This document shows, piece after piece, positions 1 through 64,000 of a stretch of DNA of 64,000 nucleotides. The first letter of the stretch is position 1. Every line of letters starts with the position of its first letter. The DNA lies in sequence record OR844650.1; one strand, 5' to 3'. The position numbers were made by a program, and so were the translations under genes. The notes beneath the pieces are model-generated. The model was not told the DNA's origin and ran no database searches. It saw nothing but the letters and a program-made list of their open reading frames with translations.

Positions 1-168
1 TCCAATTTCAAACGCATCATAGCGATCCATTAGTCGCTGTGTTACTTTACTAAGTTGTTCAGGTGTTGGTTCAACTGCAAACTTAACTCGGTATTCATAA
101 ACTGGTTTCTTTTCAGTTAGGATTTGTTGTAATCTATTCATTTTAATAACTCCATAAGGTCGTTTAAG

Positions 169-723
169 TTATTTATTTCTGTTCATTGATGCAAGCATTT
201 CATTGCGGGTTTTGTGAACTACGGTTTGCCCTTCAATTGCATCTGGGTCACCAACAGACTCAAGTTCTTTTTTTGGTTTCAAATTTAGTTCAATTTCCAT
301 TTTGTCTTTTTTAAGTTGGAGATCAACTAATTTAACATCTGAATCAATTATTTTTGCATGAGCATCAAGAGCTATTTTTAGCATAGAGTTTGCAGCATTA
401 ATCATCTCTGCTGCAAAACGATCTTCACAATTAAATGCTCTATCAAAAATATCCTCAAACTTTCGTTCTGCCATTTGTGCTAAACGATCCAATTGGGTTT
501 TTCTTGCAGTAATATCAGGTAATTCCCTCAACTGTACACGCATTGCTTTGAGCTTTTCCATTGCAATCTTTGCATCTTCCAATGATATTTCAGTTTCAGT
601 TTTGTCTTCATCCTGATACAAATCCATTTCTGTATCTTCTTCTGGTTCTTGACCAGTCATTTCAATCCATTGTTGAGCACTAGGTAATCCCAGTGCTTCG
701 TCTATTTGTGGTTTAGATTTCAT
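169..723 (-). CDS. Hypothetical protein, possibly small terminase subunit (gp16-like)
   Basis: 184 aa helical protein. The segment [26 protein letters not shown] and the tail [10 protein letters not shown] loosely resemble T4-like small terminases. ATG overlaps the corrected gp4 stop. Confidence 0.35.
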
Positions 724-1182
724 TTTTTGTATAGATTCCTTTCTGTTATAATTTTAAACTCCAATCCGGTTATTTTTACAAAATTCCATTGCATAAGCCC
801 ATTTGGATTGATTTATAGCAACTGCAATTTTTTCTTTTTTGGATTTAGCCAACTCCATGTGGCATTGTTTGTATGGCTTGACTTCTAGTACTTGAGCATG
901 TTGCTTACCATCAGCACCAATATACAGTACATAAAAATCAGGCCAGTACTGGTGGACTTGTCCATCTATTGGACTAACATAAGGAATACTAAACGGCTCA
1001 ATACTCCATTCAATGACTGCTGGATTATTATCCAATGAAATCATTATGTCCTTTTCCCACGAACTACGGTATATTGGTTGATTATTACTTTTATACTTTT
1101 TAATGTTTTTTATAGGAAAGATACCTTGAGCTTGCTTAGTATTTGTTATCTTTGCTGGGTTAAATTGTTGATTGAAAGCCAT
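720..1182 (-). CDS. Head completion nuclease (T4 gp4-like, TnsA-type), with apparent +1 frameshift near 768
   Basis: Motifs YRSSWE, EPFSIPY, YWPDF, EVKP, NQSKW. The expected C-terminus [15 protein letters not shown] lies in the adjacent frame and ends in an ATGA overlap with the next gene. Confidence 0.85.
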
Positions 1183-2276
1183 TAAAAATCTCCTAAAATG
1201 TTACCTAATCCGAATTTTGAACTTGCTTCAGAAACCAAACTACCAAACCCTATGGCGTTAGCACCTCTGGTTACAGCAGAACCTATGTTTCGAATTGTGT
1301 CAGGAGTAATGTCACCACGCAATATATCACCAGCACTACTTATTATATCACTAACTGACGTACCTGCTCGGATAATTTTACCAATTGTTAAAATTCCTTT
1401 GGTTTTGTCGTCTAATTCACCAAAATACTTAAAAAACCCACTAACACCAAGACCTTCTGTGTCTGTTATTAGTTGTGCTATTTCCATAGTTGGTACACCA
1501 ATGCTCAAATATCCTTCTGGTCCGAAGTTGTTACATGCTTCATATCGCATAGTTAACGATATTAATGAAGGGTCTGCTTCACTTTCCATAGATTTGGTTT
1601 CTAATTGTACGTCTTCAATGAATACATTTATCATGTTATGTACAGTATATGTTTCATTATCAATCTCATATATGTTAATTGATTTGAAAAAGTACTGATT
1701 ATCGTAGTTTCCATTGTTCATTACTGAACGTCCCCAGTTACCACCTAAACCATTAAAGTTTTCAGGTGTACTTAGAACATCATTTCGATATGACTGTGGA
1801 TTTTTATCAAAGAAATCACCATAATAAAACTTTCTATATGCATCCATTAGTAAGTAACCAGCACCATCAACGGTATCATAAAAAACGACATTACTTGGTT
1901 TGTAAACAATGTCACCAGTAACTAGTCGTTTTTTGTTATATTGGTTTACTGTTTCAATATTAAATGAAAAACTTGGTAAAGTTACATCTTTAACAAAACA
2001 TGATACATTATTAACATCAAAATCTGTATGTGTATCTGGTAATTGAGTTTTAATAAAGTTTTTTGCAAAAGGTGTTAAAACAAATTCTATGATAAAACTA
2101 TTTTTGAATTTTGGTAAATTATAAAATGAAAACCCCATTTCACCTGCTGTACCAAACACACGTTGTGCAGCATTATAGTTCTGAAAAGCAGGTTCACGAA
2201 CAATGTTTATATTATCAATAACGCCATTTACAATACTTGTACCAGTACTGACAAATGAATCAAAAAAATCACTCAT
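1182..2276 (-). CDS. Tail-tube-fold baseplate/tube initiator protein (gp48/gp54-like)
   Basis: 364 aa with the tube-fold pattern [27 protein letters not shown]; adjacent to tube and sheath genes. Confidence 0.6.
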
Positions 2277-2287
2277 TCATTATCTCC

Positions 2288-3064
2288 TTAAAATCCTACA
2301 CTACCAAAAACACGATCAATGATATCTAAACCTTGATTGACATTTTCAGGTAAAAGTGAATTAATTCTGGTACTATACATTTCTTCAATATTATCAAATT
2401 GTATACAATTATCTGGTTTGATAGTAACTACCATTTCAACTGGAGAACTTGAGCTATAATCTAATGAATCGTATGATATGTTTTGAATAACACATCCGGT
2501 TAAAACAAAGTATTCCATAACACCAGCACTGTTATATGAAGAACCACCAATAAATTGATCTACTGCATTTACTAAGCCAGAATTATTTGTTGCAGCAGTT
2601 GCAGCATCTACTAGAGTATCTCTTCCTAGATTTCCTAGTGTATCATCTGAGTTACGTCCACTCAACATCTGTATAACCAAACCAAATTTATAAGAACCAT
2701 AATCTTGGTCATTTCTGGAAGTTATTCTACGTTGAAAGTCAAGTTGTTTTTGTAATTGTCGTGATAATGCTTTTGCTGATGCATTACCAACTGAATCACG
2801 GATAGATATTGTAATTGGTTCCCAATCATGACTACCTATATAGGAAGTATTAGTAGTAAATTGATATAGTTTATGAGTACTAAATGTTACAGTAGGTCTA
2901 TCAATTTTATCAACATCTAATGCGATGTGATCACGTTCATCTATATCAGTACCGAAATTATACACAATAACACGAAACTTGTATTTTGCTTTCGGTTGTA
3001 GCATTGAACGATTACGCCCCGATGGTAAAGGAACGCCATATTTATTAATCATGTTATTTGCCAT
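2288..3064 (-). CDS. Tail tube protein paralog (gp19-like)
   Basis: 258 aa. Shares YGVPL..QPKAKYKFRV and RDSVGNASAKAL with the neighbouring tube gene; upstream TAAATA. Confidence 0.7.
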   Translation of the reverse strand: MANNMINKYGVPLPSGRNRSMLQPKAKYKFRVIVYNFGTDIDERDHIALDVDKIDRPTVTFSTHKLYQFTTNTSYIGSHDWEPITISIRDSVGNASAKALSRQLQKQLDFQRRITSRNDQDYGSYKFGLVIQMLSGRNSDDTLGNLGRDTLVDAATAATNNSGLVNAVDQFIGGSSYNSAGVMEYFVLTGCVIQNISYDSLDYSSSSPVEMVVTIKPDNCIQFDNIEEMYSTRINSLLPENVNQGLDIIDRVFGSVGF

Positions 3065-3110
3065 AGCAACCTCTTTTTTATTTTATAAGGCATTATACTT
3101 TATTTAGCAT

Positions 3111-62404: not shown

Positions 62405-62594
62405 TTACACCATGTACATTTAGTACACCGTCACTGAAATAAATTCGATCAATCGTGAGTTCACGTTTATAATCCCAATCATCATACCAGCACAGAACAC
62501 GAATGCCTTTGTACTTTGTAGTTAAATCATTTTCTAATATAGTCAAGTAATCAATATGACTTTTGAATATCTCTAAGTCCTGCTCAAACATCAT
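62340..62594 (-). CDS. Hypothetical protein, small family D
   Basis: LTTKYKGIRV motif. Confidence 0.55.
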   Translation of the reverse strand: MMFEQDLEIFKSHIDYLTILENDLTTKYKGIRVLCWYDDWDYKRELTIDRIYFSDGVLNVHGVNDFGHSYTYSNNAKFKRIYNE

Positions 62595-62851
62595 TGTTCC
62601 TCGTATAATTCTATATCATCAACTCCAACTTGGCGAATTGCAGTACTTCTGATGAATGTATTTTTTTCAAACAAACATACTGTTAAACGTATTTCACACT
62701 TCAATGCACTGTAATAAATCATATCAATAACACCATATGTTTCATACATTTCTACGTATACATTTCGACCTAAGTACTTTTCTTCTAAATCAGTAATTAG
62801 ACTATTGATAAGATTACCTATCTGTGTTATATCTGTGTGAAATTTATCCAT
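62591..62851 (-). CDS. Hypothetical protein, small family D
   Basis: LEEKYLGRNV motif; GAGG SD. Confidence 0.6.
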   Translation of the reverse strand: MDKFHTDITQIGNLINSLITDLEEKYLGRNVYVEMYETYGVIDMIYYSALKCEIRLTVCLFEKNTFIRSTAIRQVGVDDIELYEEQ

Positions 62852-63040
62852 TATAATAAACCTCTCACATAAAACATTGATGAAAATAGATAATCATCAG
62901 TACTGGAATTTAGTAGTTTATCAAAACTATAATTTTTATGCTTATTTTCATACAAAGACAATCTATAGTATCGTTCTATATTTTCTAAGTAGTCTTTTTG
63001 TAATAACATCTGTGTTGTTACATTCACTATAATGTACCTT

Positions 63041-63074
63041 AAAAGAAAAAGGGACCAATATATGATCCCTTTTG
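63041..63074 (-). terminator. Intrinsic terminator after pseT
   Basis: AAAAGGGA/TCCCTTTT stem followed by a T-run. Confidence 0.7.
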
Positions 63075-63076
63075 TA

Positions 63077-64000
63077 TTAGAAATTTCCTTCAGCCACTTG
63101 GAAAACTTTCAACCCAAGTAGCTTACGCCACATGAATACAACTTGATCGCGGTCATCATATACCTTTTTAACATCGTAATGATCAACCACATTTTTCATG
63201 TACAGGTCGAATTTTACAACATCATCAGGACGTTTATCATCGATATCTCGCATAAACAATGCATCGTAAGGAACACCCCAATTCTTAAGCCACTGTTCGG
63301 TATCAGCACGACACCCTTCAGTACGCCCACTCATGACGATAATCTTGCGTTTATGAAAAACTGCTTCAGCGATAATAGACAAAATAACTTCTTCATCAGG
63401 TGTATCCTGAAGAACAGTACTTTCATCGTAAGGATTACGACCCCATTTATGAGCAAGAGTTCCATCGATATCAACGATGATAGCAGCTTCGCGTGAATTA
63501 CCATAGTAACCAATGTGTAATGCCTTACTATAATAGTACGTATCTGCCATTGTGTCAATGATATCATCTTGTACTGAACGCTCACGCTGGAGGTTATATT
63601 TCTTACAAAGTTTTACGAACTCTTTAATCTTAAAGAATTCATGAACATCTGCACCACGGTCTTCATTAGGTACAAAATCATCATAGAAGTTCTTTTCTTT
63701 GTAATCATAACCATTATCTTTAGCCCATACTTTCCAGAGATTACGGAAATGTTGTTTAAGGTTTGTATCGGATATGATGATGTTCCAACCATTCTCTGCT
63801 GCTGAATTTGCTGCACTGAACTGTAAATTAGTTACGTGCTGCTCATTAGCATCGTTGAATTTGTAAGCATCATGTGACCCAGCCATAGATTCACGAATAT
63901 CATCACGGTTGATGTTGATAGTCTTGGATTTGGCATTTTTAATTTCTTGAACTGCCCATGTGGTTTTACCACACCCAGGTAATCCAACTGTTAGTGTAAT
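63077..64000 (-). CDS. pseT: Polynucleotide 5'-kinase/3'-phosphatase (T4 PseT-like), 5' end beyond the window
   Basis: The frame stays open to 64000: P-loop GLPGCGKTT, NRDDIR, SDTNL; HAD motif DIDGT, SGR, DDRDQV..FQVAEGNF. Confidence 0.93.
   Translation of the reverse strand: MTLTVGLPGCGKTTWAVQEIKNAKSKTININRDDIRESMAGSHDAYKFNDANEQHVTNLQFSAANSAAENGWNIIISDTNLKQHFRNLWKVWAKDNGYDYKEKNFYDDFVPNEDRGADVHEFFKIKEFVKLCKKYNLQRERSVQDDIIDTMADTYYYSKALHIGYYGNSREAAIIVDIDGTLAHKWGRNPYDESTVLQDTPDEEVILSIIAEAVFHKRKIIVMSGRTEGCRADTEQWLKNWGVPYDALFMRDIDDKRPDDVVKFDLYMKNVVDHYDVKKVYDDRDQVVFMWRKLLGLKVFQVAEGNF

Follow-up and report, generated by a model that had tools for sequence, protein, structure and literature searches.

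The closest described analogue of the element treated here is HIP1 (GCGATCGC) of cyanobacteria, a hyper-abundant short palindrome that occurs about once per gene or more and is accommodated in all reading frames through synonymous codon choice (PMC5861425). HIP1 is conserved between genomes beyond background, which has been read as the outcome of selection rather than of biased repair, and a role in chromosome structure has been proposed for it (PMC5861425). The present study concerns the palindromic hexamer AGTACT, together with the octamer CAGTACTG that extends it, in a window of 64,000 nt from sequence record OR844650.1 (the window being the whole stretch of DNA analysed), which belongs to an Asteriusvirus jumbo coliphage of the PBECO4/121Q group. 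AGTACT shares with HIP1 its hyper-abundance, its recruitment through synonymous codons, its conservation beyond background and its non-random spacing, and the analogy drawn in a first-pass annotation of this DNA therefore holds statistically; the word, however, is a different one and its carrier is a 350-kb enterobacterial virus rather than a cellular chromosome, which makes the likeness one of behaviour and not of membership. HIP1 further differs in that cognate orphan methylases are known for it, in that no link with promoter operators has been made (Xu et al. saw no sign of gene regulation), and in that blocks with a one-sided variant in its place have not been reported.

The window matches Escherichia phage ECO103 4-12-1 at 100% identity, in keeping with its initial description as jumbo phage DNA, and PBECO4, phAPEC6 and slurp01 at 99%; these relatives are jumbo myoviruses of ~350 kb in the genus Asteriusvirus, within the Rak2-like group. 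It has a GC content of 33.4% and ~107 open reading frames (ORFs), almost all on the minus strand, including genes for the tail sheath and tube, NrdD/NrdG, PhoH and DNA ligase as well as many unknowns. Jumbo phages of this clade (PBECO4, 121Q, RaK2, GAP32, CBB and relatives) are often isolated and are considered for therapy, and more than 80% of their genes have no assigned function; the Rak2-like clade is not known to form a phage nucleus, unlike phiKZ-like phages. Whole-genome figures for PBECO4 refer to NC_027364.1 (348 kb).

An exact count yields 159 AGTACT sites in the window, one per ~400 bp along its whole length, and 34 copies of CAGTACTG, in agreement with the hand count of ~155 and 34 in the first-pass annotation, whose ten example coordinates are all correct. 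Base composition predicts ~21.5 and ~0.6 copies, respectively, close to the ~22 and <1 previously estimated from a GC content of ~33%. The hexamer averaged 17.5 ± 4.2 copies (maximum 28) in 100 dinucleotide-preserving shuffles of the window, and the order-1 Markov expectation for the octamer is 0.7; enrichment over expectation amounts to 9.1-fold for AGTACT and 46-fold for CAGTACTG. When words are ranked against the order-1 Markov model, GTAC, AGTAC/GTACT, AGTACT, AGTACTG/CAGTACT and CAGTACTG each come first in their own size class, and thus constitute one nested motif. Under maximal-order conditioning, z is 6.2 for GTAC and 6.5 for AGTAC/GTACT, and AGTACT occurs 159 times against 128 expected from 5-mers, the full palindrome being commoner than the product of its halves. 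This residual is small because the 5-mers themselves already hold the signal, so that the loss of enrichment on conditioning on GTAC and 5-mer frequencies, which had been named as grounds for dropping the observation, is only formally approached; a second such ground, equal enrichment of many other hexamers, finds no support, no other hexamer of the window coming near the level of AGTACT.

The signal lies in the DNA and not in the encoded proteins, since both synonymous shuffling and the usage of synonymous opportunities place it far above expectation. Within-gene synonymous-codon shuffles gave 39.3 ± 5.5 AGTACT against 148 observed (z≈20) and 2.2 CAGTACTG against 34; the check on codon choice that had been proposed at the outset thus leaves AGTACT first among all 4096 hexamers. 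Sites fall in all reading frames (Ser-Thr 62, x-Val-Leu 55, x-Tyr-x 30-31), as already remarked in the initial claim that no single protein motif explains them. By frame, AGTACT is carried by 52, 49 and 45% of synonymous opportunities in the window and by 51, 41 and 36% in the PBECO4 genome, against a codon-usage expectation of 6-15%, whereas T4, with the same host and a similar GC content, uses 8, 0 and 3%, which equals expectation. A peptide or codon-usage artefact is ruled out by the shuffles and the opportunity analysis. Inflation of the counts by a repeat family or paralogy is ruled out as well: beyond ±1 the flanks are almost uninformative, enrichment extends to every 10-kb bin, and in the first of the two blocks described below the variant sites have unrelated flanks. 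Within the window, 148 of the 159 sites lie in ORFs, nearly all of them minus-strand ORFs, with a density of 2.55 per kb in coding and 1.85 per kb in intergenic DNA.

The immediate flanks mirror the palindrome. In the window, position -1 is C at 75 of 159 sites and G at 8 of 159, and position +1 is G at 71 of 159 and C at 14 of 159. As frequencies, a C at -1 (0.47) is matched by a G at +1 (0.43), against 0.06 for G at -1 and 0.10 for C at +1, and a weaker A/T pattern reaches to ±9, the symmetry being present although genes are nearly all one-stranded. A 5' C or 3' G had been reported for about two thirds of the first 60 sites; the exact figures are 38 of 60, and 112 of 159 overall. The fuller form of the site is roughly tt-C-AGTACT-G-aa, and the symmetry of flanks and palindrome fits recognition of duplex DNA.

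Enrichment in AGTACT is a clade trait of giant enterobacterial Rak2-like phages. PBECO4 has 891 sites in 348 kb, a level of ~2.5 per kb held across the ~350-kb genome, with every 10-kb bin 4-21-fold over expectation; these bins, the 46-fold octamer and the 9.1-fold hexamer agree with the genome-wide over-representation of at least about 10-fold that characterises a HIP1-type word. The observed-to-expected ratio runs from 8.7 to 9.7 within Asteriusvirus. Among phages of other hosts it is 7.1 for RaK2 (Klebsiella), 9.5 for BF (Serratia), 13.8 for GAP32 (Cronobacter), 14.8 for 7t3 (Salmonella) and 17.7 for CBB (Pectobacterium), and AGTACT is the top hexamer in all of them alike. Extending the count to relatives and hosts, as had been suggested, thus gave a divided result: the enrichment is common to five genera of Rak2-like phages, and is absent from E. 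coli K-12 (ratio 0.6; 0.06 sites per kb), T4 (0.6) and Stenotrophomonas phage CM1 (0.7), while Xanthomonas phage XacN1 (AP018399.1, 100,001-150,000) has 0 sites against 9.3 expected. This distant jumbo relative avoids AGTACT, the opposite of the enterobacterial clade. A general trait of coliphages or of AT-rich T4-like genomes is ruled out by the T4 control. With 2.5-5 sites per kb in the phages against 0.06 in E. coli, the two DNAs differ 40-80-fold in density. AGTACT is also the target of ScaI; restriction targets are normally avoided by phages, but this one is enriched ninefold here and avoided in XacN1. Other palindromes are avoided in PBECO4 (CAGCTG 0.03-fold, ACCGGT 0.07-fold, GACGTC and CGATCG each 0.12-fold). 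The PBECO4 hexamers most over-represented after the AGTACT family include CACCAG, TGCTGG and CTGCTG, and of the E. coli Chi octamer GCTGGTGG this genome has only 7 copies on its plus strand and 15 on its minus strand.

Comparison of related genomes shows slow decay of the sites within the genus. Relative to CMSTMSU, 65.5% of AGTACT sites are intact, against 41-43% of local same-frame control hexamers (about 5 standard deviations), and relative to 121Q the values are 86.8% and 77%, with gains equal to losses. Between genera, ~50% of shared opportunities are occupied on each side, nearly independently (both used in 48 cases, against 38 expected), which indicates that density is conserved while positions turn over; conservation at orthologous positions, another of the checks initially proposed, is therefore clear within the genus and weak between genera. 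Spacing is more even than chance: the coefficient of variation (CV) in the window is 0.755, a value that 0 of 2000 simulations of random placement (0.99 ± 0.075) came down to, and the widest gap measures 1313 bp where ~2270 bp would be expected. The spacing is likewise sub-Poisson in RaK2, GAP32 and 121Q and, within PBECO4, in 15 of 17 genome blocks (p = 0.001, sign test), and per-gene counts are under-dispersed, siteless short genes being rarer than Poisson predicts. HIP1 displays long-range periodicity of 10-90 kb in cyanobacteria; for AGTACT, regularity was examined at short range (CV ~0.8). Outside the terminal repeat, density is equal in intergenic and coding DNA. None of the 18 one-mismatch neighbours of AGTACT is depleted (range 0.55-2.4-fold): transition neighbours all stand at 1.09-fold or above, up to 2.4-fold, and the lowest pair, AGGACT/AGTCCT at 0.55-fold, lies inside the normal spread, which argues against a repair sink. 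A sink of the very-short-patch (VSP) type, comparable with that acting on CCWGG in E. coli, would deplete precursor words, and no such depletion was found. Taken together, slow decay, even spacing, under-dispersion, equal densities and the lack of a depleted neighbour favour selection for a set density over unconstrained repair drive.

Two findings, located partly outside the window, go further than the first-pass annotation, and the first of them concerns the early promoters of the terminal repeat. Asteriusviruses have a direct terminal repeat of ~21 kb, measuring 20,668 bp in Sharanji (PMC11895373) and 20,993 bp in fEgEco12, where it was confirmed by digests (PMC13070987); in vB_Ec-M-J it is annotated at 21,525 bp. 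Its equivalent in PBECO4 (~132.6-153.5 kb) has the highest AGTACT density of the genome, with 10.8 sites per kb in intergenic DNA. When six genomes are pooled, the distances between sites show a peak at 20-22 bp, with 38 pairs where ~14 are expected, and these paired sites are sigma-70 promoters (e.g., at PBECO4 143,809 and CBB 7,010) of the form aaaAGTAC|TTGCAA-N10-12-AGTACT-n-TATAAT, in which the upstream AGTACT overlaps the first T of the -35 box and the downstream one ends one base before the -10 box. The two sites bracket the -35 box 21 bp apart, about two helical turns, on the same helix face. The design is the same in PBECO4, in CBB (14 promoters in a 22.5-kb repeat, 1-22456) and in 7t3 (18 promoters, in an early-promoter region at 14000-34000 of the analysed 7t3 sequence), and has thus been seen directly in at least three genera (Asteriusvirus, CBB and 7t3). 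Among 2.9 million IMG/VR contigs the exact pattern is present in 27 stretches, nearly all in contigs of 345-378 kb, and 14 of 15 such loci checked are 12-32-fold enriched for AGTACT.

This architecture looks like that of operators. Like repressor operators that overlap core promoters, the palindromes are fixed over the -35 box and in the spacer by the -10 box, about two helical turns apart, in many promoters of one temporal class and across genera, and the overlap with core promoter elements holds at a fixed position in PBECO4, CBB and 7t3. Operators, however, are normally confined to few regulatory regions, whereas AGTACT also occurs ~800 times inside genes.

Several other features of the terminal repeat were recorded. 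A conserved G-rich hairpin lies ~13 nt past the -10 box of early promoters, e.g., GGTGGGGAATAGTTCCCCAC. A ParE-like toxin-fold protein (PF24732, 6e-11; 84 aa, pI 10.3) is encoded at PBECO4 137,131-137,385 (minus strand) and conserved in CBB and 7t3; its gene overlaps an 80-aa ORFan (PBECO4 136,835-137,077), for which a homology search returned only close relatives without annotation. The two genes may form a toxin-antitoxin-like early pair or encode a gyrase-directed host-takeover factor. A DksA/TraR C4 zinc-finger protein, likely a binder of the RNA-polymerase secondary channel, is encoded at PBECO4 140,781-141,035 (minus strand; PF01258, 1.6e-10) and is annotated in the same region of 121Q, vB_Ec-M-J and 7t3.

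Beside the terminal repeat, the palindrome gives way to a polar form. PBECO4 has two AGTACT-free blocks, 116,608-124,301 and 126,954-132,598, the second ending within ~130 bp of the inner terminal-repeat boundary. The first holds 44 TGTACT on the plus strand (3.7 expected) and 0 AGTACA, the second 13 AGTACA (1.5 expected) and 1 TGTACT; a one-sided variant is thus 9-12-fold enriched in each, in opposite orientations. As the genes of both blocks all run the same way, this polarity does not follow transcription. On the sense strand, AGTACT takes 0 of 37 opportunities in block 1, where AGTACA takes 39 of 59 (66%), and 0 of 20 in block 2, where TGTACT takes 9 of 26 (35%); outside 100-133 kb both one-sided variants stand at the codon-usage expectation of 13-14%. 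Variant sites have unrelated flanks and keep the outer C/G preference, so only one half-site has switched. The pattern recurs in four genomes, namely PBECO4, 121Q, vB_Ec-M-J and the window's own genome, ECO103 4-12-1, which rules out an assembly or sequencing artefact. On a smaller scale, 7t3 has the same order of early region, TGTACT block, normal stretch and AGTACA block (34000-40000 within the analysed 7t3 sequence), while CBB, where polar blocks were looked for, has none. In the island between the blocks, no iterons, AT-rich unwinding element or skew switch that would point to an origin of replication was seen.

Like Chi, KOPS and Ter, the TGTACT/AGTACA blocks are strand-oriented, with one orientation over-represented and a flip near the terminal-repeat boundary; EcoP15I sites in T7 are likewise of a single orientation. 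They differ from those systems in that the palindromic form, which has no orientation, serves over more than 90% of the genome, and in covering only ~13 kb; a strand bias flipping at a locus applies to the variant blocks and not to palindromic AGTACT. Tandem runs of the pentamer TGTAC (TGTACTGTACTGTACTG) are present in block 1 (PBECO4 120,478-120,493 and 117,657-117,667), and the region of block 2 (PBECO4 ~126,000-132,500) is a tandem array of ~206-224-bp paralogous mini-genes of ~70 aa each, with a strong AT skew of -0.2 to -0.28 on the plus strand.

The octamers of the window, and the sites and promoter-like matches singled out in it, are as follows.

Starts of CAGTACTG, 1-12 of 34: 944, 2243, 5363, 7418, 10193, 13180, 16808, 17882, 19522, 20254, 23329, 28768
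Starts of CAGTACTG, 13-24 of 34: 31514, 33077, 35174, 36183, 37098, 40542, 42200, 42611, 43613, 45077, 45554, 45857
Starts of CAGTACTG, 25-34 of 34: 47349, 49338, 51327, 55262, 55797, 56505, 57233, 58120, 62272, 62898
944..951: example of CAGTACTG inside an ORF, among the tail-region genes
19850..19903, minus strand: promoter-like match within an ORF; AGTACT at 19878-19883 shares the first T of TTGCAA, which 17 nt separate from TACAAT; a second AGTACT lies 20 bp upstream, at 19898
28768..28775: CAGTACTG towards the 3' end of an ORF of 939 aa (28733-31552, minus strand)
40105..40128, minus strand: intergenic pair of AGTACT sites 18 bp apart, directly before the ribosome-binding site and start codon of a gene on the minus strand; minus-strand view atcAGTACTaccacagtgggcAGTACTttttaattggagattactATG
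43505..43528: AGTACT pair (43505 and 43523), 18 bp apart, with the octamer at 43613 close by
49742..49770, minus strand (sequence view): intergenic promoter of sigma-70-like type, made up of TTGACT (49765-49770), a 17-nt spacer whose last bases are AGTACT (49749-49754) and 'a', and TATTAT (49742-47); a single base thus separates AGTACT from the downstream -10 box
60969..60986: tightest AGTACT pair of the window (60969 and 60981), 12 bp apart

In the promoter at 49742..49770, AGTACT takes the place that the downstream site has in early promoters of the terminal repeat, and this is the sole promoter of the downstream-site type reported for the window. The match at 19850..19903 may be a chance match.

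Judged from these sequence patterns, and at a little under even confidence, AGTACT would be the core of a palindromic double-stranded DNA recognition site, maintained by selection for a dimeric, probably phage-encoded DNA-binding protein. Such a protein would bind at AGTACT sites in two settings: at early promoters it could act as an operator-bound repressor shutting off early transcription by the host RNA polymerase, and elsewhere the evenly spread sites could let the same protein mark, coat or organise the phage DNA. The TGTACT/AGTACA blocks would then consist of half-cognate sites, either bound asymmetrically or escaping dimer binding. Of the three mechanisms listed in the first-pass annotation, a phage DNA-organising protein bound to the sites has the best support, through the symmetric flanks, the sub-Poisson spacing and the operator-like promoter position in at least three genera; the protein itself was not found.

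A number of points weigh against this reading. The Pfam screens and homology search that were run did not recover a cognate reader protein for AGTACT. The main screen covered 435 small PBECO4 ORFs (up to 260 aa, all but 37 of the small ORFs), and among those 435 it detected no helix-turn-helix, ribbon-helix-helix or other classical transcription-factor family; together with the ORF beside the Dam-family gene and ten conserved terminal-repeat proteins, the screened set returned the ParE-like fold, the DksA/TraR zinc finger and ORFans, and no classical DNA-binding factor. Small basic proteins of the terminal repeat that come into question are the ParE-like fold and ORFans. A simple homodimer does not predict the polar blocks, in which the palindrome is wholly missing (0/37 and 0/20) and a one-sided variant reaches 66 and 35% usage. 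The fixed promoter positions could in part reflect common descent of a duplicated promoter family. Finally, only 21% of PBECO4 sites are also sites in a partner genome of another genus, co-usage exceeding independence only modestly (48 against 38), and near-independent site usage between genera is also expected from mutational drive.

Four other explanations were considered. It is unlikely, in our assessment, that AGTACT is an epigenetic self-mark, as the first-pass annotation had also proposed, i.e., the target of a phage DNA methyltransferase, possibly with a nuclease or methyl-reader, whose methylation of promoters would set early-promoter activity on incoming versus replicated DNA. A palindrome of 6-8 bp is typical of a methyltransferase or Type II site, and conserved Dam-family (PF05869) and C5 (PF00145) methyltransferases, the sole ones detected, are encoded, with synteny in GAP32 and CBB, but no result ties either enzyme to AGTACT. 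RaK2 DNA is methylated, but bisulfite data indicate mCpG and restriction data Dam-, Dcm- and CpG-type marks (PMC3622015); for HIP1, the closest analogue, recognition by two orphan methylases has been described (PMC4390886, PMC13756078). Neither an N4-cytosine (ScaI-type) methylase nor a partner nuclease was seen among the screened ORFs, and no endonuclease/methylase pair was recognised by Pfam in the genome, of which the large ORFs were only partly screened; the neighbouring ORF of the Dam-family gene matches no Pfam family. PBECO4 does encode TnsA-like (PF08722, 3e-16; a small ORF between 1.7 and 109 kb) and PD-(D/E)XK (179-272 kb) nuclease domains, unlinked to a methylase. DNA of fEgEco12 is cut normally by ten enzymes, ScaI and RsaI not among them (PMC13070987), and a mark alone needs neither ~50% occupancy of opportunities nor even spacing. 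The polarity of the blocks is best accounted for by a strand-reading or DNA-processing phage enzyme, for which the functional unit would be one-strand AGTAC/GTACT, the palindrome supplying it on both strands and the polar blocks on one. Candidates are a T4-type primase, a T4-type topoisomerase II (with a 4-bp stagger across GTAC), a nickase seeding recombination-dependent replication, or a helicase-nuclease responding to a Chi-like signal. Motifs that serve translocating or replicating machines characteristically show a polarity that flips at a locus, and the one-sided variant takes opposite orientations beside the terminal repeat, in the same order in 7t3, despite co-directional genes; a primase, topoisomerase II, UvsX/UvsY and Mre11/Rad50-like proteins are among the phage gene products, and even spacing would suit priming or initiation sites. 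Elsewhere in the genome, however, the full palindrome is favoured over independent half-sites and the one-sided variants stay at codon-usage expectation, the fixed placement around the -35 and -10 boxes is left unexplained, no origin-like feature was found between the blocks, and CBB has no blocks at all; on balance this explanation, too, appears improbable.

Rather more doubtful is a host reader, a DNA-binding protein conserved in Enterobacterales for which the phages would have loaded their genomes and early promoters with sites in order to recruit or titrate it. The enriched phages all infect Enterobacterales (Escherichia, Salmonella, Klebsiella, Cronobacter, Serratia, Pectobacterium and Yersinia), while their Xanthomonas and Stenotrophomonas relatives lack the word, and no phage transcription factor was detected among the screened ORFs; host range and phage phylogeny are, however, confounded, and T4 shows no enrichment on the same host. 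The SlmA-binding sequence GTGAGTACTCAC, a palindrome for a dimeric helix-turn-helix protein that is scattered over the genome, has the same central AGTACT, but the three positions 5' of AGT, from -3 to -1, must be G, T and purine for SlmA, with the mirror image on the 3' side (PMC3020112). These flanks are absent and partly avoided in the phage, where -1 is a pyrimidine at 73% of sites and G at 6%; in the 348 kb of PBECO4, GTNAGNNCTNAC occurs 2 times, GAGTACTC 4 times and the SlmA consensus 0 times, which excludes SlmA as the reader. No other E. coli protein is known to have an AGTACT site. Very little probability attaches to a neutral mutational or repair drive, in which sequence-biased repair or gene conversion, like very-short-patch repair at Dcm sites, would turn near-cognate words into functionless AGTACT. 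High occupancy about equal in all genera and largely independent usage of shared opportunities are in its favour, as is the balance of gains and losses, and slow decay could be re-conversion. It is opposed by the lack of any depleted one-mismatch neighbour (transition neighbours at 1.1-2.4-fold, AGGACT/AGTCCT at 0.55-fold), by an intergenic density that does not exceed that of coding DNA outside the repeat, by spacing more even than random, and by exact promoter positions kept across genera; the switch of the pressure to a one-sided word in two defined blocks is likewise unexpected for a genome-wide enzyme bias. The modification-linked mutation bias that had been put forward initially is disfavoured on the same grounds of neighbours, intergenic density and local re-specification.

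Binding of a dimeric protein to a selected palindrome, the reading preferred above, also has a more far-reaching version, possible but speculative, in which AGTACT is a genome-wide code. A clade-encoded protein of unrecognised fold would read it, tell phage from host DNA by the 40-80-fold difference in density, shut off sigma-70 early promoters through paired operators, and organise or shield the 350-kb genome, with the opposed half-cognate arrays as a directional device. If this were true, these arrays might, for instance, block or trap forks, transcription or a translocase in a polar manner, and would be a kind of element undescribed in any phage.

Further observations on the window and its relatives concern other features. 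On the coding strand of the window, TATTTA (9 against 45.5 in synonymous shuffles), TAAATA (17 against 41), AAAAAA (83 against 146) and GATC-containing hexamers are depleted; the depletion of TATTTA and TAAATA looks like avoidance, on both strands, of words resembling T4-type late promoters (TATAAATA). At window position ~25,300, PBECO4, phAPEC6 and several relatives have a further ~3.4 kb, with an annotated HNH endonuclease, that is missing from the window genome, 20 kb of the window aligning to 23.4 kb in two pieces. PBECO4 gp009 (8,513-9,937), also annotated as 'HNH endonuclease', matches DUF2201 putative metallopeptidase and VWA-like domains in Pfam and not HNH, and this annotation is probably wrong. 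The sole annotated DNA-binding-type gene of the window, which nothing ties to AGTACT, is the following.

21080..21520, minus strand: Dps-like gene (DUF5856/ferritin-like; annotated 'starvation-inducible DNA-binding protein'), PBECO4 gp055; Pfam PF19174, 1.9e-28

A prior account of AGTACT enrichment was not found in the literature on Sharanji, phAPEC6, CBB, RaK2 and fEgEco12, as the first-pass annotation had supposed for this phage group; a full-text search for the word or for CAGTACTG was also empty, and no reported ScaI/RsaI digests were found. The enrichment points to a sequence code not previously described, probably read by some protein to mark or control phage DNA. The function of HIP1 has withstood ~30 years of study; AGTACT provides another instance of that phenomenon, independent of the first and easier to work on, and offers a direct experimental handle in E. 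coli K-12. In practical terms, the word affects ScaI/RsaI digestion patterns, synthetic recoding and host prediction based on codon usage. The polar blocks show that the constraint can be locally re-specified, which current ideas on over-represented words do not predict. Occupying half of the positions that the proteome allows, shared as a clade trait by at least five genera and present in every early promoter class examined, AGTACT is among the strongest sequence constraints in these genomes, and it touches the question of how 350 kb of AT-rich DNA is organised, protected and expressed on time without a phage nucleus.

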